A DNA stretch of 64,000 nucleotides from Cycas panzhihuaensis (GCA_023213395.1 CM041465.1:137027741-137091740); one strand, 5' to 3'; shown: positions 8,890 through 35,700, counted from the stretch's first letter. The notes: generated from the sequence alone by a model not told the origin. Translations and numbers: made by a program.

Positions 8890-11800
8890 GTGAGTCCTAA
8901 TTCGGTACGCATCTTCATGAATTGATCTTCAGTGAGTGGCTTGGTGAACATGTTCGCAAGTTGTAATTCACTCGGACAATAGTCGACCTGCAGTTTCCCT
9001 GACTTGATCTACTCACAAATGTAATGGTGTTGAATCTCGATATACTTTGTACACGCATGAAACTCTGGATTCTTTGACAGACGAATGGTACTCTGATTAT
9101 CAACAAAGAGAATCGGATGTCTATTGGAAACGCCAAGAAATTCCAAGAGACCTTGCAACCATGCTGCTTCTTTCTCACCAGCACTGAGTCCTTGATATTC
9201 TGCTTCTGTAGAAGATAGCGCCACTGTCTGCTGCTTTTTCGACTGCCACGAAACAAATCCATTGCCAATACTAAACAGGTATCCAGCAGTGGACTCCCAA
9301 TCGTCAGAATCTCCTCCCCAATTAGCATCCGTGTAGCCATGCAACCTGATCTTCTCACCTCTGCAGTATTCAAGACCAAGATTGATTGTCCCCTTCATAT
9401 ATTTCAGAATCCGCTTTGCTGCCACCAAATGAAGCTCTTGAGGATTCTGCATGTAGCGGGAAACCAATCCAACAGCGTATGCGATATCTGGCCTGGTATG
9501 AGTCAAATAAATGAGACTCCCTACCGACTAGCGATATTTTGTGCCATCTACAGAAGGTTGGGCCATATCCTTCTGCAATCTTGCACCTTTTACACATGGT
9601 GTTGCAACAGGTTTGCAGTGTTGCATCCCAAATCTTTCCAGTAAGTTCTTCACATACTGCGATTGCAACAACACGATCCTATCTTCCATCTGCCTGATCT
9701 GAATGCCTAAGAAATAGTGAAGTTTCCCAAGATCCGTCATGTCAAATGAAGCTTCCAAATTGGATTTGATTTCGGTTATAGCCTTGCCATGATTACCGCC
9801 GATGATTAGATCATCCACATACACCATGCAAGCAACTACAGAAGTCCCTCTTCTTTTCACATGTAGGTTCGGGTCGAGTTCTGAAATTTCAAAACCTTCA
9901 ACTTTCAACTTGGCATCCATCTTCTCATACCAGGCACGAGGTGCTTGTTTTAGGCCATAGATTGACTTTTTCAGATGGCAAACAAGATGCTCCTGTCCAT
10001 CCTTAATGAATCCCAGAGGCTGCGACATGTATATCTCCTTCTTTAGATCCCCATTAAGGAATGCAGATTTAACGCCCATCTGGTGTAACTCCCAATCTAA
10101 TGCAGCTGCTAAGAAAATGAGTAAGCAGACCGATGTCATTCTGGAGACTGGTGCATACGTCTCCTCGTAGTCAATTCCTTCTTTTTGCTTGAATCCCTGC
10201 GCAATAAGTCTGCCTTGTACTTGTCCACCTCTCCATCGAAGCGGAACTTTGTCTTATAGACCCACTTGCATCCTACAAGGTTCTTTGACAGAGGTAGTGG
10301 AACCAAATCCCACGTATCGTTCTTCATCAAAGAACGATATTCTTCGTCCATTGTAGCTCTCCATCTTGGATCTCCTTTCGCTCCAACAAACAAATTAGGA
10401 TCACTGGAGTCATTGGTGTCTACCAGCAAAGTTCGACTGGCATGCTGACTTCTGGTTCGTCAGTCATCAATTAGGGTTTGCATCGCCACACCAGAATCTT
10501 CAAGAGTTTTCCTTGCCCATAAAGGTATAGAAGGACTCGTTGTTGGAGGTACTTCTTGTTGTGGCGGCTCCTTACTGTTACTCGTCCCACTCGATCCTGC
10601 TTCCTCAGGTGCTATAGCGATTGGCTCATTGTCCTCTTTGCTTGAAGAATCTGGAAATGGGAGAAGGGGAGGGTAGAAAGGTTCCTCTGATGCCTTTTCA
10701 GCATGATACGTTGATGACTCGTCAAATTTAACATCTTGACTAACCATAATCTTCTCCCCCTGTGAATCCCATAGTCTGTAGGCTTTGTTCTCCGTGCAAT
10801 ACCCCATGAATATGCACTTAAGACTTTTTCGATCCAACTTCTTTCGGGTATCATCTGGGATGTGGGCATATGCAATACACCCAAACGTTCTCAAATGGCT
10901 AATGGTAGGCTTCCGACTGGTCCATTTCTCTTCGGGGGTCATGCTGCAAATTGCCTAAGTGGGTACCCTGTTCAAATTATAAGCTGATCGCCACAACCAC
11001 GCCCAAAACTTCGGTGGCAGGTTTTTAGCATGCACCATACACCTCGCCATCTCCATCATGGTACAGTTCTTTCTTTCAGCAACTCCATTCAGTTGTGGGG
11101 TATACGGGACTGTGAACTCCCGCTTTATACCATGGTTGCGACAGAACTGATTGAACGCACGATTGTTGTACTCCTTGCCATTATCACTTCGTAAAGTTTT
11201 TATTTTCTTATCACTTTCATTTTCAACCATCGCTTTCCAATCACGGAAGCAATCAAATACGTTTGACTTGTTCTTGAGAAAATAAACTCAGGCTTTCCTA
11301 GTGTAATCATCCACAAATGCAAGTATATATTGGGCTCCTGATATTGAAGGGTTTGGGAGTGGTACCATAATATCTGAGTGCACAAGCTCCAACTTCTCCT
11401 TGGCTCTCCAGGCATTATCTCGAGCAAAAGGATAGCAGTGATGCTTGCCATACATGCACCCTTCGCATACACCGTCTGAGCTGGAAACCGATGACAGTCC
11501 TTCCACCATCTTCAACCTCTTTAGTAGTGAAATACTCCTGTAATTAAGATGCCCAAGGTGATTGTGCCACAGTTTACTTTCATCATCCGCACTGGCAACA
11601 AAGGCATAGGACTTCTTCTGAGACTGAAATTTTTCAAACACCCAGAAGTTGTCCCTAACTTTCCTGGTAGCTATGACATCAAAGTTCTGTTTTGGGTCCT
11701 TTATCAAGCACTTATCATTATAGAGCTCCACTTTCATACCTTGTTTGCAGATCTCTCGAGCAGACAGAAGGTTCAACTGCATCTTGGGTACATAATATAC

Positions 11801-12830
11801 CCCGGAAAACTTGTCTCCTGCAATGGAAACTTCACCGATACCATCTACCGGCAACACACGAGCATCTCCAAGAACAATCTCAGCACCACTTTGATTTGCA
11901 TTCAACGTATCAAAGTTCCGCCTTTGGTAAGAGATGTGCTTCTACGCTCCAGAATCCAACACCCAATAGTCTCTCCGATCTGACTCGGCTGACAAGGTAT
12001 GTGCTTGGACACAATGAGCAGCAACACTCTTTCCTTTATCATCTTGGTTACCTTTGCGCTTGTCACAACGTTTGAACCAACAGTTCTTTTCGCGGTGACC
12101 ATCCTTCTTGCAGTAATTGCACTTTTCATTAAACTTCTTCTTGTCTTGAGAGCTTTCTCCAGATCTTTGTGTGATTTTCTCCTCCTTAGGGGCCTCCTTC
12201 CTCTGAGTTTTCATGGCTAAGGCTTGACTTGAACCATAACCTCCAAGCAATCCATGATGTTTTAGCTTGGCATCCTCTGCTAGAATTAGGTTTTTGAACC
12301 CATCAAAAGTTTCTGCCTCCATCACTTCGTCTCTACCGTAAATGGTCTGGAATGTGGCGAACACAATTGGCAACTTCGACATGATTATCACAAACAAGAG
12401 CGCATCATCGATCGAGTTCTGCTTTAACTCTTCTAGCTTGTTCTTCAAGTCAGTTGTTTTATTTAGGTAGGAGCTAATATTGTTCTCATCTTCAATTTTT
12501 GAATTGAGTAGTTCCAACATCAGAGAAAGACACCTATTCGTCTTCTTCTTCTCAAAAGTATCACATAACTTTGTCCAAAATCTCGGCTGGGTCATCCAGA
12601 TTGTGAACTAGAGCCCTCTGGTCCAGTGCCAGTGAGAGTTTCAGTAATCCAACGGCCATATATTGCTTCTCTTCAAGTTTGATACGCTCCTTATGGTCAA
12701 GTGGGACTGAAACAAGCTTCGCCTTGGTGATTCCCCAGAGTTGGTTCACCATCAATATAAGCTCCATATTAGCCTTCCATTCGGTGAAATTGTTACCGTT
12801 AAAGATAACCTTAGGCATAAGCTTCTCCAT
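8890..12830 (-). pseudogene. Copia gag-pol polyprotein, frameshifted
   Basis: Gag with CNYCKKDGHREKNC knuckle; PR WVLDSGA; GAG-pre-integrase LWHNHLGH; INT LRSDNGKEY/TPQLNGVAER; RT YVDDL; RH ALSSTEAEY. Confidence 0.95.
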
Positions 12831-14350: not shown

Positions 14351-14617
14351 TGTTCGGGAACATGAAATCATACACAAATGTTCCCATACACAAGATCTTT
14401 AACCATACATAGCAAGCAACAAATAGAAAACACAGAAAGCAGATGCACAGTACATAGGATTTACGTGGGAAACCCTTTCGTGAAAAAACCCACCACAAAG
14501 AGGATCTTTGATGGATCACTTGATTATTGCACAATGAACTTGGATATGAATATACAAGGCCTCAAGGCTTTTATACCCTCCAAGAGTTGTCACCCGACTA
14601 GGGTTGTGACCCTTTGA
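14351..14617 (-). repeat. E1 5' LTR, missing ~90 bp at its outer end
   Basis: Identity with the LTR at 8411 stops at GACCCTT(T/C)GAA. Confidence 0.9.
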
Positions 14618-15601
14618 AATTTTACCGTAGTCTTTGACAAATGTATGATAATAGCTTATGAGTCCCAAAAATCCACAAGGACTCTTGAGGGACTTTGGCT
14701 TTGGCCAATTTTGCATGTGTTCAATTTTATTAGGGTCCACTTTAATGCCCTTCATCGAAACAATATGTCCAAGGTATTTCGCTTCCCTGGTACCATAGGA
14801 GCATTTGTAACACTTGGCACGAAGTTGGCTTTTTGTTAAAAGTTGTATAGCTTGGTCCAAGTGAATCAAATGATCCTCTTGTGTTTTATTGCAAACCATG
14901 ATGTCATCAAAGAATATTAGTATGAATTTTCGGAGGAAGGGTTGAAAATTTTGATTCATCAAGCTCCAGGTGGTGGATGATGCATTTGTGAGGGCAAACA
15001 ACATTACCATAATTCATAGTGGCCTTCATGAGTGTGGAAGGTTGTCTTGGGAATATCCCCCTGTCATATTTGGATATGGTGGTAGCCAGACCATATGTCT
15101 AATTTGGAGAAAAAACAAGCACCATGCAATTCATCCAATAATTCATCAATTACTAGAATAGGAAATTTGTCCTTGATGATGATTTTTTTCAGCTCTCGAA
15201 AATCCATACACAACTTCAATGACCTATCTTTCCTTCTAACCAAGAGTATTAGAGGAAAAAGGGTTGATACTTGATCGAATGACCCCTGCATCCAGTAATT
15301 CTCTGACTATCTTTTTGATTTCTGTCTTCTGTGTGTAGGGGTGAGGTCGAATATTAGGTGGTGGATTATCGGGAATTGATTGTGTGGTATGGTCATGCAA
15401 CTGTCGAGGCAATACTTTGTGGGGGTTTGCAGATACTAAGGCATGCTTTTTGAGGACTAATTGCTAATCAAGAGGGACAGTTGCATCTGGCATTGGGTGT
15501 GATGTTGAGTCAGTTGTTTTTGTCACTTGTACTACACATAGTTGAGCCACCACTCCCTAAAGATCCCTTTTTAATATTTTCTCCATTTGGTGGGAGCTAA
15601 C
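14618..15601 (-). mobile_element. Gypsy element C, RT segment
   Basis: LVRRKDRSLKLCMDFRELKKIIIKDKFPI; FILIFFDDIMV; YLGHIVS; GFLGLISYY. Confidence 0.9.
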
Positions 15602-16431
15602 TGTTGACTCAGGTGTTCCCACTGCACTTGTGGGAACAATGCACTTGTCAAGGTTACATAGGCTATAGTCTAGTTAGGATACTGTCAACATGGTTATTCA
15701 CATACATTCCACAGATTATTCATAGAATTATATCACAATAGTACACAACAGCACAGAAATCAACACATATTCAGCTTTTCATCCTTATAAACACAGAGAA
15801 TAGACAGTTTTCCACGTAACTCTTCTTTCCATTAAGCAATAAGTTCAACTACACAGAGGGCTGGAATGCATCCCTGTGCATTCCAGCAGCATACACTCTT
15901 CTGTTACATGTGTACCCAGGTGGTACTTATCAATAACACTTGCTTCAATCGGCTGTCATATGTGCTAGCATCCGTACCATTGCGTACCCTGAATAGTCGG
16001 CTCTCAGCCTAACCAAATGGTCCTTGCGTACTTCCTTAAATATGCCTCTTCGTACCTTTTGGCTGAAGGGTTATAACTGCCTATCATAACCGTACCCCTT
16101 TAGTCAAACGTACCTTTTCCTTAATCATTAGTTATATTTTTAACTAATGTCTTCATCATGTCCGTACGTTAAATGCGTGCACGCCCGCAGCCTCCCAGGG
16201 CTTCTATTGGTCCCGTCTGCGTCGCATCGCCTGCTTTAGTTCCGTTCCATTTGTTGGTATGTATCGTATTACGTACACTGCCTGGTACACACATCATCGT
16301 GCATACGGAATACTAGTTTTTCCACTGTTTCGCCTCGTGCGTACCTCCGTACGGTCCGTACCTACACATCTAGGGTTATCCAGCCTACCTCTGGTCTTCC
16401 AACAACTATATGATCAATTTATGCCCCAACA
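15602..16431 (-). repeat. Element B 3' LTR (830 bp)
   Basis: Direct repeat of 25375-26190 with scattered substitutions and small indels. Confidence 0.97.
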
Positions 16432-16526
16432 TCTATCCCGGGTCAACAGTATGGGTTTGAGCATCCTTGCTCAACAAAATTCCAAAAATTTTTCAAAATT
16501 TTGGGGTATTCCTCCCTCGCTCTGTC

Positions 16527-17608
16527 TCAAGGTGGCTCCTGCTGCCTCTGTCCTACTAGGATTTCTTCATTAATCTGTGTTAAGGTAGCAATGATAGCAT
16601 CCTTTTCCTTAATTTTATCTTGAAGGGCAACTATCTCGGCTTTATACCCTTCCTCCATTTCTTGAATAAGCTGAATTATAGGTCCTGATTTATTATGTGG
16701 TGTGGGAGGTGCTGAGGTTTCACCTGCTTCCATTGACGGAGGGAAGTCTTCCCATTCTTCCCAGGAGGCCTTTGCTTCTTCTTCCTCCTCCCCTGATTCC
16801 TCTTCACCTTTCTTCCGTTTACTTCTTCTGTGGACAACCTGTTTTGTCCGATGTGGAATAGGTGTTCCTGGTGTTCTCTGCAACTAGGCGAGTACCTTAT
16901 GCATTTGTTTTTGAACCCGTCTTCTTGCTTCCGGCCGTTAATCGAATCCGGAATTCCGCGCCTTTGTTTAATGATAGGTTCCCGCGGAGAAATGGTGGTT
17001 CTTGTTAGCTGTACTTCTGGACATTGATAAAACAAGATAGCCACTAATAAGGAGGGATGTCGAAAGGGATGTGTCCTGATCTCCTTGAGTTGCTGCCTCA
17101 TGTTTTCTGCCAAGAATTCAGACCAATTCAGTTTCTCTCCTTCCCGAATTTTTAATAACACTGGCATCATTCGTCCCGGAATGTATGTATACTTCCGTTT
17201 GGACAAAAATCGGGAATTTATAACTTTTGCTATCCATTGGAGTCTGATATCAATGATATCTGCTACGCGAATTCCACCAGACATTATCTAGGTATTTGCT
17301 TGACATAAATCTCTTAACCACATTTCACGGTCAACCTCTGACCTCTTAGTACCCAGGGGAATTTTGCCTTCATTTGGGAGTTTTGTTATGGTGTGAATTA
17401 TTTCTGCATCCATCTTGACCTTCCTGCTATCTTCCTTCAGTGCTAACAAAATCTGGTCCATGAGTTCTGGGTCATAATACATAGGATTGCAATAAATGTA
17501 GTCTCTCCATCCTGCTTGTTTTACCTTGGTCTGAAATTGAGCTGGTAAAGCTTGCAATTCCTACTTAAGCTTTGGTATAAATGCTTCTTGGCATCCTGTT
17601 GTCCTCAT
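16527..17608 (-). pseudogene. Element B 3' accessory ORF (~360 aa; two in-frame stops, one frameshift)
   Basis: ATG at 17608; ORFs 17288-17557 and 16676-17284 share one frame; comparison with the 1-850 homolog puts a frameshift near 16900-16960 into the frame of 16527-16883. Confidence 0.8.
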
Positions 17609-17869
17609 TCTGGCTGTGGAATTCCAGAGATAGTTGAAAATAACCTAACAGTGCAAATCGGAACCCTACATGCGTACTTTTTGGGTATGCTTGCCGTTTT
17701 CTTGAAATTCTGTGCCGAGATGCGTACCAGAGTCACTTTTTTGTCTTGCAGGGTTGTATGGTTGTTTGGCGGAAATTTTGGAGTCGAATCTTTCGTCGTT
17801 TTTCGCTGCGTACTTCACGGAAATGCTCGCAGGTACGTAATGTTTTGTCTTATTCACTATTTTGTCTTA

Positions 17870-18290
17870 TATGTGCTTTTGGTATGTATAATGTTATTCG
17901 CTCCCACTGTGCGTACTCGATTGCATACTTTTTAGGTACGTATAATGTAACTAGGCACTTAGGCTTACTTTCCACTGTGCGTACCCGACTACGTACTTTT
18001 CAGGTACGTACACTGTAATCGGTTAACTTAATTTTCTTTTCACTGTGCGTACCTGATTGCGTACTTTTCAGGTACGTATAATGTAACTGGGTAACTTAAA
18101 CTTTCTTTTCACTGTGCGTACCTGACTGCGTACTTTTCAGGTACGTATAATGTAATTTTGATTCACTTTTTTGAACTATGCGTACTGGACTATATTTTCT
18201 TGGTACGTATAGTGTAATTTCGAAATTTAGTCACTTTTTTAATTGTGCGTACCTGGTAACATACCTTTTTGGTACGTATAATGTATTTTG
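17870..18290. repeat. Tandem array, ~68-bp unit, 6 copies plus a partial, with internal inverted repeat
   Basis: CACTGTGCGTAC-like starts at ~17905, 17973, 18041, 18110, 18174, 18241; CGTACCTGA-n11-TCAGGTACG stem in the central units. Confidence 0.92.
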
Positions 18291-18517
18291 CTTGTATGCT
18301 TTTGAATTTTCCTCTGAATTTTTCAGTTTATGATGCTATTACTTATGTATGTGATGAGTTACGGTTGTTTTTTATTTTTTTCCAATTTTTTTTTTTTGTC
18401 TCTTTTTCCGTATCCATACCGAACTGGATCATGTTTCGGTATCAAGGCAATTCGTTTTGTCTCAACTTCATGCAACACAATATAATACAACCAACTGATC
18501 CGACTGATAAAGCTGAT

Positions 18518-19792
18518 TTATTCAATGCATGGTTTCAGTCTGCTACCATTCACTCGAGTTGGTAGCAGTGGTCCATCTATTTCCCGAAGTTGCACCGATC
18601 CGTTTTCGAAGACTTTTTCTGCGATGTACGGTCCCAACCACCGCATCTTGAGTTTGCCGGGGTGCATTTTGAACTTGCTGTCGTAAAGCAGCACTTGATC
18701 ACCTTCTTTGAACTGAGGTTTACGTAAATGTCGGTCGTGCCATGCTTTTTGTCGTTGCTTTTCTACATTTTGCAACCATTTTGCCATATGTCGCTTCTCT
18801 TCTAATCGCACTAATTCTTCCAATCACTGTCGTAAGGACTGGAAGTTGTCTAATCGACATTGCATAGCAACTCGTAGACTTGGTATCTCAAATTCCGTCG
18901 GAAGAATGGCTTCTGTGCCGTAGACAAGCTGGAATGGAGTTTGTCCAGTTGATCTTTTATACGTTGTTCGGAATGCCCATAGCACGGATGGCAATTTCTC
19001 TACCCAATCAGAGCTGCGGACGTCGCATATCTTCCTTAAGCAATTCTCGATTATCTTATTCGAACTTTCCGCTTGGCCATTTGCTCTCGGATAATAGGGA
19101 GTAGATTTCCGATGACTTATCATGAAGGCTGATGTCAATGTCTCTATAGTTTGATTCAGAAAGTGGGCGCCTTGGTCACTCACAATTTCCAAGGGGCATC
19201 TAAATCGTGTAATAACCACCTCGTACAGAAATCGAGTTGTACTTTCCGCTTCGGCTTTCCGTAATGCTCTCACTTCTACCCACTTCGTCATATAGTCAGT
19301 TGCCACCAAAATATATCGGGCTTTCGATCGACGAGCGGCTGGTTTAATTGGCCCCACGAAGTCGAGTCCCCATTTCTCGAATGGTGCTAAAGGTAAAATG
19401 GGATGTAGGGGTTGCAAATCCTATCGATTAGGTTTCCCAACTCGCTGGCAATAGTTGCAAGGTTGGATCCACTTCCTGACGTCTTCGAACATGGATGGCC
19501 ACCAGAATCCGGACATCAAAATTTTCTGCCATGTGGCTAATTTGCCCATGTGTCCACCTGCTACTCCTTCGTGTGCTTGCGACATGATTTGGTTGATCTC
19601 GTGTGGTCGAACACAACGTCGTAACACTTCGTCTAGTCCCAATTTGTATAATTCCCCATTGATTAGTTGATATGGTTCTACTTTTTTGATAAAATTCCTT
19701 TTTCCCGTGCGATCTAATTCTGCCGACACTTCTCCAGTCGCTAAGTATTCTGGTATTCCCATCATACCAGTCAGTTGGGACCGCTTCCACAC
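18518..19792 (-). pseudogene. Element B integrase (H2C2 zinc finger, catalytic core, GPY/F motif)
   Basis: AHEGVAGGH...CNYCQR; WGLDFVGP; IVSDQGAHF; ANGQAESSNK; RWLGPY; point stops only. Confidence 0.95.
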
Positions 19793-19799
19793 TGAATAG

Positions 19800-21200
19800 T
19801 GTTGCGTCTGGAAAGTCGTCTGACACTCCTGTAGCTTTTTCCCCGTTTGTGATTCTCGACAACTGATCAGGGATGATATGGGCTTTTTCGGGTTTCACAA
19901 TGATCTTAAAAGAAAATTCTTGGAACAACATCAACCACCTGCTGATTCGTCCCCGCATGATCGGTTTGTTTACCAAATACATCAACGCTTGGTGATCGAC
20001 GAAGAACAAAAATGGATTTGACAATAGATAGTGTCGAAATTTCTGCAATGCATATACCATGCCAAGTGCTTCCCTCTCTGTCGTCGTGTAATTCTGCTCG
20101 GCCTTTGTAAGTTTTCGACTGGCGAAATATATCGGGTGGTCTGTTTTGTCGTCATTAGGTTGTGCCAATACACATCCAATAGCGTATTGTGATGCATCCA
20201 CATGTACATGGAAGGTCTTCTTCCAATCGGGAAATCGCAGTATAGGTGCTGCTATGATAACTTGTTTCAGTGCTTCAAATGTTGTTGTTCCTCCGTCCAT
20301 TCCCATTCAATGTTCTTTTTCAATAATTCCTCTAGGGGTCCTGATATGTATGCATATCCCCTGATGAATTTTCTGTAGTATCCCGTCAACCCCAAAAAAC
20401 CTTTCAGTTGTTTCCTCGTAAGTGGCATAGGGAAGTGCAGAATTGCAGATACCTTGGCTGGATCTCGGCCAATCCTTCCTTGCTGACTATGTGCCCCAAC
20501 AGGTTTCCGAAGGGTACCGGGAAGGTACATTTTTCTGGATTTAGGCACAACTTGTTTTCACAGCATGTTTGTAACATTTCCCTCAAATTCTCCATGTGAT
20601 CCTTCATTAATCCATACAATGTCCAATCGTCTAGGAATACCGCAACTTTTTCTCCGATAAATTTCCAAAATATGTTGATTACAATTCGTTGGAATGTAGC
20701 CGGTGCATTCGTAAGACCGAATGGTATCACTTTATATGCATACGTTCCCCATTCTGTCACGGATGTGGTTTTCGTTTGATCTTTTGGGGCAATCTGCACT
20801 TGATTGCACTTGCTGAATCCATCGGTGAAGGAGTATATTTCATTTCTTCCTACTGCTTCTAGAATATCTTCCGTAAAAGGTAACGGAAAGGGATCCTTCT
20901 TTGTTACCTTGTTTAGTTGTCTGTAATCCACTGCATACGGATTTTCCCATTCTTTTGGGAACTACCATTCTGAGGCTCACCCGATCCACTGTAGTCGATT
21001 TCGTAAATATATCCCGCTTCCAACATTTTGTCTAGTTCAGCTTTCACTTTTTCCTTATATTTAGGATTCATCCGGTATGGCCTCTGTTTTACTGGTTTCG
21101 CATCTTCCACCAAATTGATATGATGCATTCTTATTTCTGGAGGAATGCCTTTTAGGTCCTTGTATGACCATGCAAATACGTCGCGGAATTCTTCAAACAA
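19800..21200 (-). pseudogene. Element B reverse transcriptase and RNaseH
   Basis: VFAWSYKDLKGIPPEI; DYRQLNKVTKKDPFPLP; PFGLTNAPATFQ; VFLDDW; HVDASQYAIG; YTTTEREALG; VDHQAL. Confidence 0.95.
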
Positions 21201-21529
21201 CTGTTGGGCTTCCGCTACTGTTTGATGATCCCAATAATTTCCAATTCGTATGAGTTTGGGATTGTCTTAGCTGTCGACATTGATCTCAGTAGTTTTAAAC
21301 TTAGTTACTCCAACATCTTCCTTATTTCCGGTTTTGTGTCCTGGAGTATCCTCTAACTTCCTTTCTCCAATATTAAGTTCTGTGAATTCTGCAGGGTAAT
21401 TCATAATTTCTTCTCCCTCGTCAGGTACTGATTCTTCCTCCTCTTGGTTTGTCAGTTCTTGTTCTAGTTTTATACTCATTAATCTAATATGCTTTAGGAT
21501 TCTATCTATTTACTTGTTTTCCGAGGTAT

Positions 21530-21975
21530 GCCTAAAGTTTTTTATAAAGGATTTCTTCAAGCTTCCCCAAGTCACATCTAAACTTTGTTCCTTTCCGAGG
21601 AACCAGTCCTTGGCTACTTTTCCCAGGGTATGGTAGAAGTAGTTAGGCTAATTTTGTTTTGGTATACTTAAGGATATCCATTTTTGTTTACATTTTTGTA
21701 TATGCTCCCTAGGGTTTCGACCTACATAAAATAATGGGGTGTCTAATTGTTTTGGATGATCGAATCGGATTCGAAACATCGTTTGTAACTCTTTCCAATT
21801 TTTAAGAATGGTTTGGTGGGCTAGGTACCAATACCAAGTCTTTCCCCGTAAGGTCAATACTAGGTCTTGTTGCCATTGGGTTTTATCCCAATTCCCGTGT
21901 TCTATCCAGTATTCAACACAATGAGTTAGGTGGGTAGTCCCATATAACTGCTCTCCGTAGAACGACTTAACATGC
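21530..21975 (-). other. Two tandem Gag capsid N-terminal-like domains, in frame within Pol of element B
   Basis: Repeat 1: FYGEQLYGTTHL...TLRGKTWYWY...NWKELQTMFRIRF. Repeat 2: FYVGRNPREHI...*PNYFYHTLGKVAKDWF...TWGSLKKSFIKNF. Both parallel the element's own Gag TLRGVPLAWY...SWEKIKKSFEERF. Confidence 0.8.
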
Positions 21976-22649
21976 TTCCCAATGTAAATTTGGTGATTTA
22001 TTTCTTCTAGGATAATAACTCTACTGTTTAGACCAGAGTCTCTAGAAGTATTTACCAGTGATTCTCCTTCCATTTTCCTGGTTTTGGCGCCAATTGTTGG
22101 AAGGGATCGGTTACTGGGTGGGTATACTTCTAAGGAAGAGGAGGAAGGAATATTACTCCCTTCCTTGGGTTGTAATAGGGGGGGGGGGGGGGGGGAATCT
22201 ACCTCAGGACCCACGCCTGATGTAGAAGGGAGGTCGGGGTTACTATTAGCTACTACAAAACTATGAAAAATATTAGGTATGCTAGGGGGTTGTTGGTCTA
22301 GTTGGCTGTTATCCCTTAAACTATCATTAGTCATTATATACTCAAAAGAATCTAAATTATCATTAATGTCTTTAGTTATACATTTGGATAATAAATTACA
22401 TCTATGAGAAGAGGAGTTTACTTCATAGGCATCCTGCAGCCAATAATCCACGAATCTCATTCCATTTTCGTCGTCCGAAGAGTTGTATATTTCTCCAAAA
22501 TAGGTCGGTTCTTCTTCTTGGTAATTGGTCGATGTCGTGGGCTCTTCCGCAGTATGATAGAGGTTTTCTTCCTTGAGGGAAGAGGATGTTGTTTCGCTTG
22601 TGACAGTCGTACTGGATCCCTCATCCGGTATCATTTCGATGGAATTCCT

Positions 22650-23000
22650 TCCTAGCATCGGTAATAGTAATTTGTTCCCATTATCCGATAAGGTGAAGGT
22701 CACATTTTTCCAATTTTGGAGGTATTGGGTCTTGTATAGCCACGGCCTCCCCAATAGTGCTGGGTAGGGAGTTGCCCCTTTTTCTGTTTTCACGATTGTG
22801 AAATCAATTTTTACCACAATCCCTGCCACATCCACCTTGATGTCGGCTAATCTTCCCATAGGTCGCACTAATAATTCGTTGGCCAATTTCAACGAATATG
22901 TTGTCTTCAACTTTGGGCTTCCCACTTTCGCCATGTCAAAGCGGTAATACGTTCAATGGCGCCTCCATCAACAATCACTTTTGGGAATGTTTCTCCCAGT
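22650..23000 (-). pseudogene. Element B aspartic protease
   Basis: VIVDGGA active-site motif and ALLGRPWL, separated by a frameshift. Confidence 0.85.
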
Positions 23001-23428
23001 ACCATCATTGTTACCATAGGATCCATATCGAATGATGGCATTATTTTCTTTAAACTCTTTGTAATTCCGCGTTGTAGTACTCCTCCTTTAATCCAATCAA
23101 TGACTTGGCATAGGGGGATGGTCAATTGTAGCTGCTTTGACCAAATTCTCCATCAACAACAAAGATTCCTAATGTCTTCCACTGGTAACCCTTTAAATAG
23201 TTCTTCTATTTGCACCATCTGAGGCTGCACCTTTGGCTCTTCTGGTATGTTCTCTTTTTCTTTCTGCTTATTTTTCCGTACGTATACGTATTTGGTTTCT
23301 GGTTTTCCCATTGGTAATGTATTTTCTTCCTGAGCTAAGCCATCCAATACTTGTTTTGCTTGTTTAAACCGATCCATTTCTGTTTGCGGATCCCGATATC
23401 CTTCGTTTTGTTTCTCCTTCTGTTTATT

Positions 23429-25237
23429 CTAGAGTTTTACGTTTTTAGTTTCTGGTATAATCGTCATTAGGTTAGTGGCTCTGGCCTTCCCTTTACAATC
23501 CTCTGTCTTATGGTCACTTGGACCGCAATTACTGCATATGAATGGTTTCTGCTCGTATTCTTGTTTAGTTGGGCATTCAGACTTCCAGTGCCCAAATTGT
23601 AAACAAATGAGGCATCTCCCCATGGGTTGCTTCTTTCTCGAGGGCTCTTGTGTACCCCTCGTTGTGTAAACATTCTGAGGTGGGTTGCCTCCCCTTCCGC
23701 TACCTCGTCCTCTGTAGGCTTTCCCTCTGGGATTGTAGAAACAATCTTTAGTCACATGCGTATCAACATCACATATGTGGCACCATTTGTCCTGTTGGTG
23801 CAATGCACTAGTTTTTGGATTCAGTGCGCATTCTTTAGTTGTATGTGAATTCTCTTCACAGATATGGCACCATTTGGTTATCTTTTCGGCATGGTCTTTC
23901 TTTTTCGTCGTTTCTTCTTCTCTGCTATTTCTGATTTTTAGCCTGGCCACTTCCTTTCTTAAGGCTTCCAATTCTGATTCCTCTTTTGCTACTCCCACCT
24001 GGCAGAAGGGTCGATTATACTGATTTTTCTTGAGTTCCCTAATCTCCTCTTGCAATCTTAATAGTAGGGAGTCATGTCCTCTTGCCTGTGCATCCATCTC
24101 CATTTCAAAGTCCAATGCTAAATCTTTGGCATTTTTAAATGATTTCAACGGATGGGCATGTATCATGGCTCTCAGTTTTTCATTCAATCCTCTCACAAAA
24201 TAGTTCTTCATGTTGTGGTCAGTTACCGTTTCGTTAATCATACTGGCCGCGATGATTTTTATTCTGCTGATATAAGTTAGCACTGATTCTTCCGGCCTTT
24301 GTTTAATTTCCTTCAAGGCGATTTGCACTGCTTCGTTACTACGGAACTTTTGAAATCTTTCTTCGAAGGATTTCTTGATCTTTTCCCATGAACCATTCTT
24401 GTTTATTTCTTTGTACCATGCCAATGGTACTCCCCTCAGTGTACAGGCGAATCTGGCTTTTATCTCATCCTCGTATGTAATCTTTTTCACATCAATCAGA
24501 TTCTGAAAGAGGTATACGTGTTCTGCTGTGTCCAAAGTGTCGTTGAAAATCAACTTTCCAAAGTCTCTGTAATCATCCATCTTGGGGAATTGCAACAATG
24601 TCCCACCTGGTGGTGATTCTTCCCTTTTCTCCTCCTTCGGGGATGCAGTTGGAGTGCCTACTGCTGTATTATCCTTCCCAAATAACGGATTCTTAAATGG
24701 GGTTTTAATATGTATAGGTTCTACTACACCTGGCACTTGTATGGTTAACGATGTCACTGTAATATATGCTTGATCAGATCCTCTGTCTGATGAATCCTCA
24801 AAAAGCTGTCTTGTGAGCTTATTTTCCCAATATGCCGAGGGACCTTCCTCCGCCTTCTTCTCGCTGTCACTTAGGTCCTTCGGACTATCCTCCACAGGTA
24901 TACTTCCCTCTTTTAAGGTTTGTTTATGTTCCTTATTCACCTTTGATTTTTCTTCATATTCTGGGCTAAACAAATCATCTTTGATTGGGGTTGGTGTTAA
25001 TACCATACGTTTTCCATTAGTTCCCTCTTCTTGTTCTTGAGGTGTCTGGGCTCCACTTGCCTCAGATCCTTCAACGGACTGTCCCTTAGTCTCGTTGTTC
25101 TGCAAACTTAATCTCCTCACCCTTCTCAGTTTTGATTCCTTCGACCATCGTAATGCCCTTTGTCTGCTGGTTTCCTTCCCCTTGGGTGAAGTATCCTTTT
25201 GTGGCTCTTCTGACCTTGAAGGCCTCTTAGGTGGCAT
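23429..25237 (-). CDS. gag: Element B Gag (602 aa open; capsid plus four CCHC zinc knuckles)
   Basis: TLRGVPLAWY; major-homology-like IKQRPEESVLTY; FVRGL; four CX2CX4HX4C motifs. The frame continues past the stop toward the protease. Confidence 0.92.
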   Translation of the reverse strand: MPPKRPSRSEEPQKDTSPKGKETSRQRALRWSKESKLRRVRRLSLQNNETKGQSVEGSEASGAQTPQEQEEGTNGKRMVLTPTPIKDDLFSPEYEEKSKVNKEHKQTLKEGSIPVEDSPKDLSDSEKKAEEGPSAYWENKLTRQLFEDSSDRGSDQAYITVTSLTIQVPGVVEPIHIKTPFKNPLFGKDNTAVGTPTASPKEEKREESPPGGTLLQFPKMDDYRDFGKLIFNDTLDTAEHVYLFQNLIDVKKITYEDEIKARFACTLRGVPLAWYKEINKNGSWEKIKKSFEERFQKFRSNEAVQIALKEIKQRPEESVLTYISRIKIIAASMINETVTDHNMKNYFVRGLNEKLRAMIHAHPLKSFKNAKDLALDFEMEMDAQARGHDSLLLRLQEEIRELKKNQYNRPFCQVGVAKEESELEALRKEVARLKIRNSREEETTKKKDHAEKITKWCHICEENSHTTKECALNPKTSALHQQDKWCHICDVDTHVTKDCFYNPRGKAYRGRGSGRGGNPPQNVYTTRGTQEPSRKKQPMGRCLICLQFGHWKSECPTKQEYEQKPFICSNCGPSDHKTEDCKGKARATNLMTIIPETKNVKL

Positions 25238-25360
25238 TGGAAGGTCCCCTGGCTGCCGATGGCTTAGTTACAACCTGCCATCACGACAATGCCGGGGTCC
25301 TCGCCCTTTACACATTCCTTTCCTTGAAACTCACAGGCCTGTCCCTCCTTAATGGACGTA

Positions 25361-25373
25361 GGCAACGGAACCA
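25361..25373 (-). promoter_or_regulatory. Primer binding site complementary to tRNA-Glu
   Basis: Minus-strand TGGTTCCGTTGCC, 1 nt after the 5' LTR; complement of the plant tRNA-Glu 3' end ...GGCAACGGAA-CCA (recalled sequence). Confidence 0.8.
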
Positions 25374-25374
25374 A

Positions 25375-26190
25375 TGTTGACTCAGGTGTTCCCACTGCAC
25401 TTGTGGGAACAATGCACTTGTCAAGGTTACACAGGCTATAGTCTAGTTAGGATATGGTCAACATGGTTATTCACATACATTCCACAGATTATTCACAGAA
25501 TTATATCACAATAGTACACGTGACGTAAATCAACACATATTCAGCCTTTCATCCTTATAAACACAGAGAATACACAGTTTTCCACGTAACTCTTTTTTCC
25601 ATTAAGCAATAAGTTCAATTACACAGAGGTCTGAAATGCATTCCTGTGCATTTCAGCAGCATACACTCTTCTATTACATGCGTACCCAGGTGGTACTTAT
25701 CAATAACACTTGCTTCAAATGGCTGTCATATGTGCTGGCATCCGTACCATTGCGTACCCTGAATATTCGGCTCTTACCCTAACCGAATGGTCCTTGCGTA
25801 CTTCCTTAAATGTGCCTCTTCGTACCTTTTGGCTGAAGGGTTATGACTACCTGTCATAACCGTGCCCCTTCAGTCAAACGTATCTTTTTCTTAATCATTA
25901 GTTATACCTTTAACTAATGTCTTCATCATGTCCGTACGATAAAATGCGTGCGTCGTGCAGCGACTCAGGGCTTCTCTTGGTCCCGTACTATCGCATGCGT
26001 CGCTTGTTTAGTTCCGTTCATTTGTTGATGCGTATACGTATTCGTGCCGTTCTAGGTACACACCGTCATACGTGCCTGAATCTGGTTTTCCACTGTTTTG
26101 CCTCGTGCGTACCTCCGTACCTACACATCTAGGGTTATCCAGCCTACCTCTGCTCTTCCAACAACCATATGATCAATTTATGCCCCAACA
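25375..26190 (-). repeat. Element B 5' LTR (816 bp)
   Basis: Adjacent to the PBS and to the TSD. Confidence 0.97.
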
Positions 26191-28430
26191 CTAACAGTTT
26201 GGGTGGGACTAGTCATTATGCCCACCAAGGTGTATTGTTGTTCATTAACTATAAACTCCATCCATAGCTCAGTGATATCCCATAGGATGAGTCCCAACGT
26301 GCGAAGCCATTGAGCCCTCAACACCATGTTAGAATCTCCTAGTTAGAGTGCAGACATGTCTGATTTCGTAGCTTAGGCCCCCATGGATAATTTGATGTTT
26401 CGACACTTGCCCTTACAATACAATGTTCCTTTGTTAGCTATCATTACCTCGAAATTGTTGAGTGGGTAAATGTAACATCCTGTTTGTTTGGCTACTCTAG
26501 GATCAATAAAATTTTGGGCATTCCTTGAGTCAATGGGAATAGTCAAACGATGCCCCTTGAAGTATACCAACACTTTCATGCTTTGGGGTGTGTTAATTCT
26601 AGCTAATGTGTGCATTGAAATTTTGAGGGTTGGGTCCTCATTGCCAATGGTCTTTTTAGTTTGTTCATCCTTTGAGTTATCATCTAAGGCATCTAACATG
26701 TCAACCATGGAAGGTGTTTTGACATCTGATAAATGGAGTCTTTGTTTTGTGCTTTTGTGACTAGGCATATATTTTTCATCATAGTTATAACATAGCTGCC
26801 TTGTTTTGTAGGGGGCCATCTCTTCTTGACTTAAGCGCTTAATAGGTGGTGCCCTGGGCCGAGTCTGGTCAAGCCAACTGTGGGGTCGAACTTGTGGAGT
26901 TTTGAATGGTTGGTGCATGTCGACAGATTTATTAATTTTGCTAACCCTAGGGCTTCTCTGAAGGTAGTGGGCTTAAACATTTTAACTTCCACATGCATGT
27001 CCTCTTTTAAGCCACTGATAACACAACTCTTGAAGAAAGCCTCATCGAGTTACACTATTTGACTTGGCAATTTTTCTAACTGTGTTTGATGCTCGCGGAT
27101 AGAATGAGTTTGTTTTAATTTAGTTAAGGCCCCTATGAAGTCTTCATATTCATTTGGTCCAAATTATGTGAGCAAGTATTTGCTAAATTTGACCTACGTG
27201 AGGACACCATAGGTTTTTTCTAGCCACTGGTATGACTGGATTGTATCATGTTCTAGGTGGAATGATGCTACGGAAACTCTTTGGTCCATGGGTGTCTAGT
27301 GGACAGGGAAATATTGTTCTGCCCTATATAACCAACTAGCAAGATCTTCGCCATCAAATTTAGGAAAATCTAGCTTAAGGGGCTAGAGTGTGCCACCAAC
27401 TTGGGGTTTGCTCGAAAATTGTTGGCTTGCATTGGTACCCTGTCCTGTGGATGAGTGCCCATCTTGCGACATTAGAAGGTTCATGGCATTATATTTGGCA
27501 TTCAACCCAATCAATCTATTGTTGAGGTCGTCAATTTGGTTCGGCTTGAACTAGACAAAGAAGATAAGAAGGGAAGGTGATCAGGATTTGCAAAATTCAA
27601 TCCAGCTTGGATAACTGTTAGAGTATAGCTAATTGTGTTGCTTTGGATTGTTTTGATATCCGCATCCTTTTTCTCCAAGGAGAGGTCTTGGGATTTACAA
27701 CTACTAGCTATATTAGCTTCTTGAGGTTGTTTGGTAGGGTTACTAGAGATCTATATCAAAATGATCAACTCATCAAGAGGATCGATTTGGGATATGTGGT
27801 TAGAAGTTGAAATTTTACACTCGAGGCACTCTTTGTCTGGATCACTTTGTGTTGCTAGATTTGCCACAATTCCAAATGGTTTGTAAAATATTCCTTCTTG
27901 TAGTTTTAAATTTTTCTTTACGTTACTGCCCAAGTCTATTTAGATTAGTAGTTTCAATACTTCCAGTCACTATACAAGTATGTTTAGATCTAATCTTGAC
28001 TATTGTGAGATATTCTATGTTGTAGTTTCAAAATGTCTTTCAAACCACTACCTAGGTATATCCAGATTAGAGGTTTCAATATTTTTTATTGCTGTCCAAG
28101 TATGTCAAGATCTATTCACGGCCAGGGTATGGGAAATTTCTAGTTGAGAGAGTATCTGGTTTGCAAGTTCTCTGATATACTCAAAGGTACATAGAGAGTA
28201 GCTTCCTAGTGTTAACCATTAACTAGTGCACTGCAGAGTCAGATGGCTGATGGTTGCCTAGGGCTTCCTATAACTAGGTATCTCCCAACCTAAGGGGTCC
28301 TCCTATACACCCAAAGGTATGTGGAGGCTCGATTCTATATATTGATGCTATCTAAGGCTTATGTGTTGGTGTCTTTTGCACCTTAGTTCACATGCCGGTT
28401 TATCACCAAGCATACTTAGCAAGTAACGAT
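26191..28430 (-). mobile_element. Gypsy element C, 5' part (leader, gag, protease)
   Basis: LKLDFPKFDGEDLASW near 27330-27380; ORF 26373-26918 with PR-like IDSRNAQNFI; continues across TSD CTAAC into 15601. Right boundary uncertain. Confidence 0.75.
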
Positions 28431-31499: not shown

Positions 31500-34400
31500 C
31501 TACTTAAAAAGAAATTGGCCCCAATTTTTGCTCAAGATGGAGAAAATGGTCCTTGGGTGCTGATTCAGAGATTCATTTGGCTTTGGTGGGTAGAGTCCCT
31601 TTTCGACCAATGAGAGATATGGGTGTTGTACGTTGTCGTGTCTGTCGATGTCGAGTGTCAAGAATGTTGTCTTCAAAAAGAAAAGGCTGGAAATCTGGAA
31701 CTGTATCAATAGGATGAGCGGGAGGAGGTTTAACTTCCAAATGCGGTGGCTCATATAACTTGAGTTGATTAATATTAACAACATCATGAATACCCAAATG
31801 GGTAGGTAGATCAAGGCGAAAAGCATTTGGTCCTATTGCATGAAGGATAGTATATGGACCAAACTGAATAGGTTTAAGCTTATGGTGATGCTTAACCATT
31901 TGCGATCAAGGTGAAGCTAAACTTTGTTGCCAACTTTAAAGGAACTTGGAGAACGATGTTGATCCTAAGCGGATTTATATTTGACTTGTGTTTGATGAAG
32001 TATCTGGCTGATTGTGGAATGCAGTTTGGTCATGTGATCAATAAAGGAAACAACTTTCTATTGCTCCTTTTGTTCATGTCCTATCACAGAAGAAGGTATA
32101 ACAAGGGAGAGTTCATAAAGAGCAAGTGGTTGATACCCATAGCAAATTTCGAAGGGAGATCGTCTAAGAGAAACGTGAGTTGCTCAATTATAATTGTGTT
32201 GGATATGATGCAAATGTGTGTCCCACTATTTATTGCTATGTTGGTAAATACAAAGTGCATGTACTAGAGTGCGATTAACCATACATACATCCATCAATCT
32301 GAGGATGGAACGACGTTGAAAACTTTAATTGACAACCAAGCATCTTCCATAGAGATTTCCAAAAATAGCTAAAAAATCGACTATCCCTATTGGAAATTAT
32401 AGAAAGGGGAAGTCCATAATGAGTCCAAACATGTTGAAAAAACAAGTCCGCAGCGTGAAAAGCAGAAATGTTTTTTGTGCAGGGAATAAAAATCGCCATC
32501 TTGGAAAACTGACAAACAATGACAAATATGCAGTCGTGACCATGTTGAGTTGTGGGAAGTCTGTTGACGAGGTCCATCGAAATAGATTCCCATGGTCGAC
32601 TGGGAACAAGAAGTGGTTCATAAAGTCCATATTTGTGATTAGATGGTTTTGACTGACTGCAGAGAGAGCAACGTCGTACATAGTCTTCAACTGTCTTTTG
32701 CATAGAAGCCTAGTAAAAATATTGTTGAAGATGTTGAAGAGTTTTATGCATTTCAAAGTGTCCACCACAAGTCGAAGAATGAGCTTCTTTAAGTATTTGT
32801 TGTTGCAGAGTGCCTATAGGAACACTTAGACGATTCACTTTGTAGAGGAGTCCATTTTTGAGATGATAATCTAAAAACGACTCAAGATTGGTTTTTGTTG
32901 GTTGAGACAAAGCAGTAAGGATAGGACCAAATTAGGGATCAGAAGGAAGCAAGTGTTGCCATTCGGAATATAGGCTGAGTGTGGTATTGAGGAAGGTGGC
33001 CAAAGCTAGGGTGGGAGGCCGACTAAGGAAATCAACGACTTTGTTAGAAACTCCTTTTTTGTATTTAATGACTATTTGGAATTGTTGAATATAGGAAGCC
33101 CACTTAAGATGTCTGTGTTCTTGGATTTTGGTTTGGGGGTTAAGAAACTGTAGGGGTTGGTGATCAGTATGAACAATGGTTTTGTTGCCAAGGAGAAAGT
33201 GTCTCCAATGACGTAGGGCCTGTACAAGGGCATAAAATTCTTTGTCATAAGTACTGTAGTTGAGTTTGGCTTGGGAGAAGGTTTCAAAATGATAAGCAAT
33301 AGGATGTCCTCCCTGTTTAAGAATGACACCAAGGGCAAATTGGGAAGCATCAGTTTCTAGTTCAAAAGGTTGAGCGAGATCTAGAAGACGAAGAACAGTG
33401 CGATCTGGAGGGCAATTTTGAGTTCTTGGAAAACTAATTCAGCAAAAGAGTTGCAGACAAAACTTGTGGAATTTTTGGTAAGAATGTTGAGTGGATGTGC
33501 AATGCTAGAAAAGTGAGAAATGAATTTCCTATGAAAGTTGATAGAACCAAGAAAACTTTTCAGCTCAATTAGAGTAGAAGGGGTTGGCCATTGCTGAATT
33601 ATTTGTACCCTTTCTGGATCAACATGGATGCCGTCCTCGTCAATGATGAATCCCATATAAGAGATAGAGTTTTGTGTGAAGAAACATTTCTTGAATTTAG
33701 CTTTGAGATGATGTTGTCGTAATAAAACCATGACCGTATTGACATGATGTAGATGTGCTTCCAAATTGTCGTTGAAGACCTAGATATCATCAAGATAGGC
33801 AATGACAAATTTATCTAAATGAGGGCGAAAAATATCATTGATAAGTTGCATAAAAGTAGCAGGAGCATTAGCCAAACCGAAAGGCATGACTAACCACTCA
33901 TAAAGGCCATTTTGAGTCTTGAAGGTTGTTTTCCATGTGTCCTGAGCTTTGACCCAAACTTGATGGTATCTAGAAGCCAAATTAATTTTAGTAAAATATT
34001 TGGCTCCCTTGAGATGATCTAATAAATCATCAATGCATGGCAGTGGATATCGATTTTTAACAATGTTTTTGTTAAGAGGTTGATAGTTAATACACAAATG
34101 CCATTCTTTATCCTTTTTTGGAATGAGAATTGCAGGTGAACCACAATGAGAACTACTAGGTTGAATATTACCTTCATCAATCAACTGAGCCAATTGGCAC
34201 TCTAGTTCAACATGAGTGAGAGGAGTAGTGCGATATGGAGCTTGATTGGGAAGTGGAGAACCTGGAACAAAATTAATAGAATGTTGCACAACATGCATGG
34301 GAGGTAATCCCTTAGGTTCTGCAAAAACATCAAAGTACACATCCAAAAGAGATTTTATTGCTTTAGGAGGCATTTTAGTATAATTTTTCTTTTCTGCTTG

Positions 34401-35700
34401 TCGGATTACACAAAGTACTGTTTGCTTAGAGGTGCTGGCAAGTTTGACTACAAGATTGCTTGTGATGACAACCAAGGATGGAGAAGCACTATCTGCAGAA
34501 GTTAGTTTATATGCCTTCCCATTTTTATGCAGCATATAGGTGTTATGATATCCATCATATAATGCTCGTTGATCATGTCGATAAGGGCGTCCCAAGAGAA
34601 TGTTGCTGCAATCCATAGGAGTCACATCACAATCGACTGTATCCAAAAATGGTGGAATAGCAAAAGTAATAGTGCACATTTTGTCGACCACCATTGTATG
34701 ACCATTGGCTTTTGCCCACCCAAGAGTATAAGGCTTAGGGTGTGGCTTGGTCACCAATTGTAAAGAATCCACTAATGTTTGGGAGATCAAGTTCTTCATG
34801 CTTCCATTATCAATGATACAGAGAGCCAAGTGGTCCTTAATTTGAAAATTCTATGCGAAAAGTCTCTCTTTGAGAAGCAAAATATTCGGTGGTCATCAAC
34901 ACAAGATGTGGATCTGGAGCTTGGAAATTAGGGACCTCTATGACGTCAGTGGATTCTATCAGTGCCTGATGTTTAGCAATCAAAGTGTGAGATCTATGAT
35001 GTGCTCGATATTCAGCATCTGTATGGCCTTGGCTCTTGTGAAAAGAACAATATTTTTTTGTATTAACCATCCATGGCACATTAAATGCTTTGGAACTTGA
35101 GGCAAATGCTGGAGATGGTCGTGGCCTTCATTTCAACTTGTTTTCAATTTTGAGAGCAAATTGATAAGCAGCTTCAAGTGTAGGAATCTGAAGAAGATCT
35201 ATTTCACGCTACAAAGATGAAAAGAGTCCTCCAATAAATTTCAATTTGAGAATGTGGTCTGGATTAGAGATTTTTAACCGCATAGAAAGTTTGATGAATT
35301 CATCAATGTATTGTTGAATTGTTTGGCCTGCAATTTGTTGGAGATGAAGCCATCGTGTAGTGAGTCCATCAATGTATCTCAAAGGATAAAACCGACTATG
35401 AAAAACATTTTGAATTCTGCCCATGAAATAAGTGGTTTATCACCGGAGTATGCCTGCCACCATGTTAAAGCCTGTTCTTCCATATGTAGTTCAACAACTA
35501 TTATTTTTTGTGCTTTTGTGAATTGATGTGTCTTGAAATAGGGTTCTAAACTCCAAAGCCATGCATCTAATTTATTTGCTTTCATCGTACCTTCAAAAAG
35601 TGAAATATTGATTTTAGCATCCAATTAATGGGGATGACTGAATTGGAACGATTGTTGGGACGTTCTATTTGTGCAAAATTTGTGGAAACATGGTCATCAT
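31500..35700 (-). pseudogene. Gypsy gag-pol, multiple stops and frameshifts
   Basis: ORF fragments 35379-35624 (gag), 33780-34829 (PR-RT), 33381-33764, 32275-32703 (INT) and 31573-31899. Confidence 0.92.

Follow-up and report, generated by a model that had tools for sequence, protein, structure and literature searches.

In yeast Ty3, a non-enzymatic junction (J) domain that is dispensable and is not known to be related to capsid lies between the protease (PR) and the reverse transcriptase (RT), and Ogre elements carry a spliced intron between the same two domains. Enzymes are also found at this position. Tat elements of clubmosses and gymnosperms carry an RNase H domain termed aRH between PR and RT (PMC6317226), an arrangement that has been confirmed to be common in gymnosperms (PMC10508981, PMC13468544), and some long terminal repeat (LTR) retrotransposons of rotifers, fungi (basidiomycetes) and planarians encode a dUTPase there (PMC5408684, PMC6431247). 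In a survey of plant LTR retrotransposons, aRH and chromodomains were the only extra polyprotein domains (PMC6317226). Here we analysed 64,000 nucleotides of DNA from Cycas panzhihuaensis (GCA_023213395.1 CM041465.1:137027741-137091740; hereafter the window, with positions counted from its first letter), which contain element B, a decayed but complete Ty3/gypsy LTR retrotransposon of 10,589 bp on the minus strand (15602-26190). Our preferred interpretation, in which we place about as much trust as doubt, is that the spacer between PR and RT of this element consists of a disordered linker and two tandem, diverged capsid N-lobes (around 75 amino acids and four helices each), that this module has been part of Pol for a long time and that it acts as an adaptor that docks on Gag.

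The domain order of element B, as assigned with Pfam, is Gag, PR, spacer, RT, RNase H (RH) and integrase (INT). We counted 466 codons between PR and the RT lead-in, close to the roughly 480 given in an initial annotation that was made from the sequence alone. That annotation also described a single reading frame interrupted by three point stops; one frame does hold all of the pieces from 22952 to 20916, and the stops are TAG 21648-21650, TAA 21510-21512 and TAA 21267-21269, the last of which marks the edge of RT. The translated frame runs from PR into linker 1 (21975-22652, minus strand; 226 codons, rich in S, E, N, P and T). Profiles and alignments then delimit two capsid N-lobe-like units on the same strand, repeat 1 (21747-21974; 76 amino acids) and repeat 2 (21513-21746; 78 codons). 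Between the two in-frame TAAs lies a further minus-strand stretch (21270-21509) that comprises a short helix-like part, an acidic linker and the usual RT lead-in. A single open reading frame (ORF) of 434 codons (22952-21651) covers the C terminus of the protease (ALLGRPWL), linker 1, repeat 1 and half of repeat 2. The TAG in repeat 2 falls in a column that is conserved among the other repeats. Stop codons in broken frames were read as X throughout the analysis.

Of the 461 codons of the spacer, 2 are stops in the Pol frame, compared with 18-40 stops in the remaining five frames and around 30 on average, with a minimum of 15, in shuffled sequences. Judging from its sequence, the spacer was coding until recently. 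The three stops between PR and RT could also be taken to mark an intron of the Ogre type, with the stop-containing stretch removed by splicing, and all but one of the Ginkgo biloba gene models that reach repeat 2 (see below) end at about the same point within it. However, the stops in the window lie in or beside sequence with homology to protein domains that is otherwise open in one frame, and the Ginkgo model P0008 is open through the whole of repeat 2. We therefore consider an intron to be very improbable. We also rejected a hidden aRH, because the spacer gives no RNase H signal; no second RNase H was found in any ORF piece of element B, even at permissive thresholds. A head-to-tail fusion of two elements was likewise rejected, because neither a second protease nor a zinc knuckle was found 3′ of the repeats.

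The homology of both repeats to the N-terminal part of the Ty3/gypsy capsid, without its C-terminal part, is well supported by profile comparisons. Repeat 1 has the pattern F-x-G...THLxxCxxxW...TLRG...W...W..L...F..RF.H and four predicted helices. A hidden Markov model (HMM) built from the repeats without Gag, and searched against the 712 ORF pieces of the window, matched Gag of element B at amino acids 261-306 with E = 3.2e-7, and the next non-self match had E = 0.11. This result agrees with the initial annotation, which had described a linker rich in S and P followed by two repeats that resemble the capsid N terminus of the element's own Gag. A profile built from the Ginkgo repeats only recovered the window module (E = 1.5e-8, in two domains) and the Gag of element B (E = 8.9e-4). 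The Gag N-lobe of a third Ty3/gypsy element in the window (35382-35624) reached only E = 0.28-0.75 with the repeat profiles. Because the element's own Gag is matched and that of the third element scores weakly, the module derives from a Gag of element B's own kind and not from any other Gag in the window.

Curated profiles give a graded picture. The Pfam profile PF03732 (Retrotrans_gag) has 97 positions and a gathering score of 24.1 bits. The repeat 2 piece of the window aligned to positions 2-45 of this profile (E = 0.0019, 18.8 bits), which is below the gathering score, whereas Ginkgo P0004 (25.5 bits) was above it and Ginkgo P0008, in which repeat 2 is whole, reached 40 bits in two stretches, each corresponding to the first half of the profile. 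Pfam gave no capsid match for window repeat 1 alone or for the whole 434-amino-acid ORF. Window repeat 1 is assigned on the basis of its Ginkgo counterpart and of the profile match to Gag. In no repeat of any copy did the match extend beyond approximately positions 1-48 of the 97; therefore, the C-terminal half of the capsid is absent, as had also been proposed. A complete capsid, with an N-lobe and a C-lobe, is not found here: repeat 2 follows directly on repeat 1 and is itself followed by the helix-like stretch and the acidic linker.

The His and Cys of an H-(L/I)-x-x-C-x3-W motif, as well as a His after the final (R/N)F, are kept in both repeats of both the window and the Ginkgo families. 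At the corresponding place, the Gag of element B has EHV..F and no Cys.

Structure prediction points in the same direction as the profiles. AlphaFold modelled window positions 21651-22007 from a 12-row alignment with a predicted local distance difference test (pLDDT) score of 58.7 and a predicted template modelling (pTM) score of 0.51, and placed four helices in repeat 1. For Ginkgo P0004, a 5-row alignment gave a pLDDT of 40, and this model was not used. When the repeat 1 model was compared with 350,542 PDB chains using Foldseek, the top ten matches were all structures of the Arc capsid, at E-values (1.3-3.8) that are not significant. Seven of the ten are crystals of the Arc N-lobe only, with template modelling (TM) scores of 0.54-0.63 on the target, a root-mean-square deviation (rmsd) of 2.3-3.3 Å and an identity of 22-26%; the other three are crystals of the Arc C-terminal domain (CTD) that aligned poorly (rmsd of 10.8-14.0 Å). 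PDB sequences gave no match to either the window piece or the module profile. We regard the structural match of repeat 1 to the Arc N-lobe as consistent with a capsid origin, not as proof of it.

The module is not confined to the window. In Ginkgo biloba, the tandem pair recurs in eleven gene models, with repeat 1 before repeat 2 and with 28-35% identity to the window; of these models, P0009 ends within repeat 1 and P0010 ends early in repeat 2. Smith–Waterman alignments, scored against 2000 shuffles, gave z = 14.6 between repeat 1 of the window and repeat 1 of Ginkgo and z = 12.1 between the two versions of repeat 2, compared with z = 2.6-6.8 between the repeats and z = 2.6-12.8 between the repeats and the Gag N-lobe. 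Because repeat 1 and repeat 2 each resemble their counterpart in the other family more than they resemble one another, capture and duplication predate the split between the window and Ginkgo families. The Ginkgo module has an acidic stretch upstream. Upstream of the module in P0009 (Gb_26725) there are more than 160 amino acids of N/G/Q-rich, prion-like low-complexity sequence, at a place where the window family has its S/T/P-rich linker.

Closer relatives preserve shorter parts of the arrangement. The independent relative P0001, from a Logan assembly, is 76% identical and keeps a single frame through PR and the linker into the beginning of repeat 1. This sequence jumps from the start of repeat 1 to the C terminus of the integrase in an open frame of 424 amino acids and lacks approximately 110 amino acids of the proline- and serine-rich second half of linker 1; by its sequence, it is an internally deleted derivative and is probably non-autonomous. 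Relative P0003 (47% identity) spans the linker and the beginning of repeat 1, and P0002 and P0005 (39-49%) take in the protease end together with the first portion of the linker. The 434-amino-acid ORF as a protein-search query found P0001 as its sole relative, and protein searches with the module profile yielded further Ginkgo fragments only. Scans of metagenomes and viral contigs with the module and PR-linker profiles gave no confirmed relative.

Blocks of motifs in the first half of linker 1 are conserved in P0001, P0002 and P0005. In the window (22250-22650, minus strand), these blocks read ..P(T/N)Y(F/Y)GE.. and ..F(V/I)xYW(L/M)x(D/E)xYxVxSxSxxCNL(L/F)S, and they are present in relatives at 39-76% identity. 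They could represent a cleavage site or a short binding motif.

That the module is inherited rather than an accident of one copy, and that it is old, is well supported by these comparisons. A chance nested or chimeric gag fragment in the window copy alone would fit an old and damaged element with LTRs that are only 89% identical, with gaps, and with several stops and frameshifts; in addition, searches of the window by tblastn with the module and with Gag returned self matches only, so that no second copy of the module is present in the window. Several observations speak against such an accident. The module is in frame with both PR and RT, and independent relatives at 76%, 47% and approximately 30% identity carry the module or its start. 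No LTR or target-site duplication (TSD) flanks the module, where the only repeats are imperfect chance repeats of 14-23 nucleotides, and its base composition is the same as that of the rest of element B. For want of flanking repeats and of any break in composition, we rejected a nested insertion, and we consider a copy-specific accident of any kind to be extremely unlikely. The initial annotation had likewise reported no LTR or TSD around the module and had preferred inheritance to nested insertion; the recurrence of the pair in eleven Ginkgo gene models, together with the shared module start in P0001 and P0003, adds weight to that preference.

The main rival to a functional module is that an inherited sequence was simply tolerated: a piece of gag could have been copied into Pol by template switching or recombination between elements, been duplicated and then persisted as a passive spacer, only because any sequence at this position has to remain in frame if RT and INT are to be produced. 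Yeast Ty3 offers a parallel in its dispensable junction domain. The loss of approximately 110 amino acids of linker in P0001, with the frame kept, and the rarity of the architecture among 1.84 billion representative proteins are also in line with this reading, and the PR-RT junction is known to accept foreign domains and long disordered linkers (PMC6317226, PMC5408684). However, a passive spacer should diverge quickly throughout. No similarity is detectable between the linkers of the two families, whereas the core of aromatic and hydrophobic residues and the H-(L/I)-x-x-C-x3-W motif are retained in the repeats at 28-35% identity, and the tandem order of the repeats is conserved. A contrast between conserved repeats and diverged linkers is the trace that a folded, constrained domain would leave, and it argues against a tolerated fossil, which we consider possible without thinking it probable.

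For a module under constraint, docking on Gag is the function that we favour. Capsid N-lobes of the Ty3 type make lattice contacts, and the N-lobes of Arc bind short peptides; the Arc entries matched by the repeat 1 model are complexes of this kind. Any function of the module, Gag docking included, we infer by analogy with such domains. The adaptor is preferred because N-lobes are lattice-forming and peptide-binding, and because units that lack a C-lobe can dock on a shell but cannot build one. The comparisons above indicate that the source was a Gag N-lobe sequence near to that of element B, that this sequence was captured and duplicated before the families of the window and of Ginkgo parted, and that the module is translated within Pol. 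A pair of N-lobes without a C-lobe could not form a shell, but could dock on the N-lobes of Gag or on a peptide of Gag or of the linker. Docked in this way, the adaptor would anchor RT-RH-INT to the inner face of a particle during its assembly, or retain RT-RH-INT there after cleavage by the protease, and would thereby set the amount of Pol that is packaged. More specifically, we tentatively propose that the doubled capsid N-lobe has become a working part of Pol in a gymnosperm Athila-like lineage, where its binding to Gag, or else to a peptide from Gag or the linker, would recruit RT-RH-INT into the particle or retain it there.

Units of this type might instead restrain assembly. Released by the protease or still within Pol, N-lobe-only units could cap the Gag lattices of their own or of competing elements, and so act as a brake or as a control of copy number. 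Such units lack the C-lobe that is needed to link capsomers and are closest to the Gag of their own lineage. Truncated Gag inhibitors are established in yeast Ty1, in which the p22/p18 restriction factor, a truncated capsid, acts on the assembly of particles. However, p22/p18 is built from the C-terminal rather than the N-terminal part of the capsid and is made from an internal start in gag. For the module of element B, neither a promoter nor a start of its own was seen. Moreover, an inhibitor produced in a fixed ratio to its own RT and INT would harm every copy that encodes it. A brake on assembly is thus an unlikely explanation, and we retain the adaptor as the preferred one.

Several observations weigh against the adaptor and the domain assignment on which it is built. 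The copy in the window is dead and has an in-frame stop in repeat 2, and no other copy shows the module and RT connected in frame. Among 1.84 billion representative proteins, the search returned five relatives, none of which is a full polyprotein, and the Ginkgo gene models are fragments that are not placed relative to PR and RT. Window repeat 1 has no Pfam match of its own, and the structural match is below significance and comes from a model of modest confidence.

The remainder of element B has the features expected of a Ty3/gypsy element: paired TG..CA LTRs, a TSD and the order Gag-PR-RT-RH-INT. All of its parts are on the minus strand. Comparison of the LTRs places the 5′ LTR at 25375-26190 and the 3′ LTR at 15602-16431, each with TG...CA ends, and the 5-bp TSD, CTAAC, lies at 15597-15601 and 26191-26195. 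Just inside the 5′ LTR (approximately 25362-25374) is a sequence like a primer-binding site (PBS), TGGTTCCGTTGCC, which we provisionally take to resemble a tRNA-Asp site. The gag ORF (23432-25267; 612 amino acids) is intact. It has a disordered or low-complexity N terminus of approximately 225 amino acids and a PF03732 match at amino acids 273-363 (nucleotides 24179-24451). Four CCHC zinc knuckles, which is an unusually large number, are encoded in Gag, and this ORF is still open although Pol is broken. As a protein-search query, residues 200-612 of Gag found no relative within a length range of 337-1071 amino acids.

The protease (VIVDGGA ... ALLGRPWL ... LLLPML) spans 22653-23008, with a frameshift near 22930-22950 in the window copy; an Asp_protease_2 match for this region was obtained on relative P0001. 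Gag and the start of the protease share one frame, in which gag ends at a TAG (23429-23431) that is followed by a TGA (23153-23155). Relative P0001 is open across the position of the TGA, which is therefore a lesion, whereas the TAG that ends gag may be either a lesion or a stop that is read through. Reverse transcriptase (RVT_1) lies at 20407-21266 and has a frameshift near 20916-20961. The Ty3-type RNase H (PF17917, E = 1e-35) was placed by Pfam at 19431-20306, and the integrase at 18521-19894, with an H2C2 zinc domain, an rve core and a GPY/F-type C terminus. No chromodomain was found in this integrase. With its several stops and frameshifts, the window copy of element B is dead.

Between the end of the integrase and the 3′ ORF pieces lies a tandem array of five 63-nucleotide units (17889-18306), spaced by 68-131 nucleotides (mostly 68-69), each with a short core that resembles a palindrome, GTACGTAC...GTACGTA. 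The region between the integrase and the 3′ LTR also contains ORF pieces in the sense direction (16530-17560, minus strand), which are 90, 203 and 118 amino acids long. They have no match in Pfam and may be the remains of a decayed extra ORF of the type that is common in Athila- and Tat-type elements.

The window as a whole is a nest of plant-type retrotransposons. Element B is itself inserted in another gypsy element, element A, between the protease region and RT of the latter; both elements are on the minus strand, and the flanking pieces of element A lie at 14516-15463 and 26376-27750. The third Ty3/gypsy element (33780-35624, minus strand), which has the Gag N-lobe referred to above, shows an ordinary distance between PR and RT. 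Remains of a Ty1/copia element on the minus strand (8915-12595, also given as 9528-12595) comprise gag, pre-integrase, SH3-like and RVT_2 regions, and a second copia gag is found on the plus strand (53388-54086).

Element B carries the motifs LLGRPWL and FPLPF, which are OTA-type as read by eye. By the aRH criterion, element B falls outside the Tat elements, as it has no aRH and retains a well-preserved RNase H of its own. On the basis of its motifs, its PBS-like sequence, its 3′ ORF pieces and its tandem array, we tentatively class it as an Athila-like (OTA-type) non-chromovirus.

The N-lobe of the Ty3/gypsy capsid has been domesticated repeatedly in animals, as in Arc, PNMA and PEG10, and its ability to assemble and to bind peptides currently attracts interest. 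Should our proposal for a gymnosperm Athila-like lineage hold, the doubled N-lobe would join aRH and dUTPase as a third kind of accessory domain in the PR-RT junction, and would be a case of a retroelement that has turned the protein of its shell to a second use, as an internal packaging adaptor, in a sub-lineage that is unnamed in classifications of plant retrotransposons. Extra N-lobes kept in Pol over a long period would also provide a natural experiment on the recruitment of Pol, on new tasks for capsid domains and on the modularity of the PR-RT junction. For annotation, matches to Gag profiles 3′ of a protease are usually taken as a nested insertion or an assembly error; in the lineage of element B they appear to be part of the element.

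Compared with known systems, element B combines familiar and unfamiliar features. The J domain of Ty3 is likewise a non-enzymatic segment at the same junction, but is not known to be related to capsid. Ty1 p22 is a truncated capsid, as the repeats are, but consists of the C-terminal part and comes from gag rather than from Pol. A parallel in plants is provided by the Tat elements with aRH (TatI/TatII, ‘structure 2’ or ‘copia-like’), which are also non-chromovirus Ty3/gypsy elements with an extra folded domain in frame at the PR-RT junction, are also found in gymnosperms and probably also arose by recombination between elements; their cargo is an RNase H, whereas that of element B is two capsid N-lobe-like units without aRH (PMC6317226, PMC10508981, PMC13468544). 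Elements with dUTPase have the same site in Pol and an accessory domain that is carried by whole lineages, but they occur in animals and fungi, and their cargo is an enzyme that came from a host or a virus, in contrast to a structural domain from a Gag of the element's own kind in a plant (PMC5408684, PMC6431247). With the Ty3/gypsy capsid N-terminal domain and the Arc N-lobe (PF03732 and PF19259; PDB 6tnq, 6tno, 6tq0 and 8qf5), the units of element B share the sequence pattern, the match to the first half of Retrotrans_gag, which stays below the gathering score in the window, and a predicted four-helix unit; they differ in that they lack the C-lobe, are doubled and lie in Pol, 3′ of the protease, rather than in Gag. 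Our literature search, which is not proof of absence, turned up no report of gag duplication, nor of capsid- or gag-type domains at the PR-RT junction. The initial annotation knew of no description of the architecture but did not exclude one; the junction itself was already known as a site at which aRH and dUTPase are acquired. We conclude that the capsid cargo of element B is new, and that it occupies an acquisition site, in a class of elements, that was already known, rather than representing a wholly new principle.

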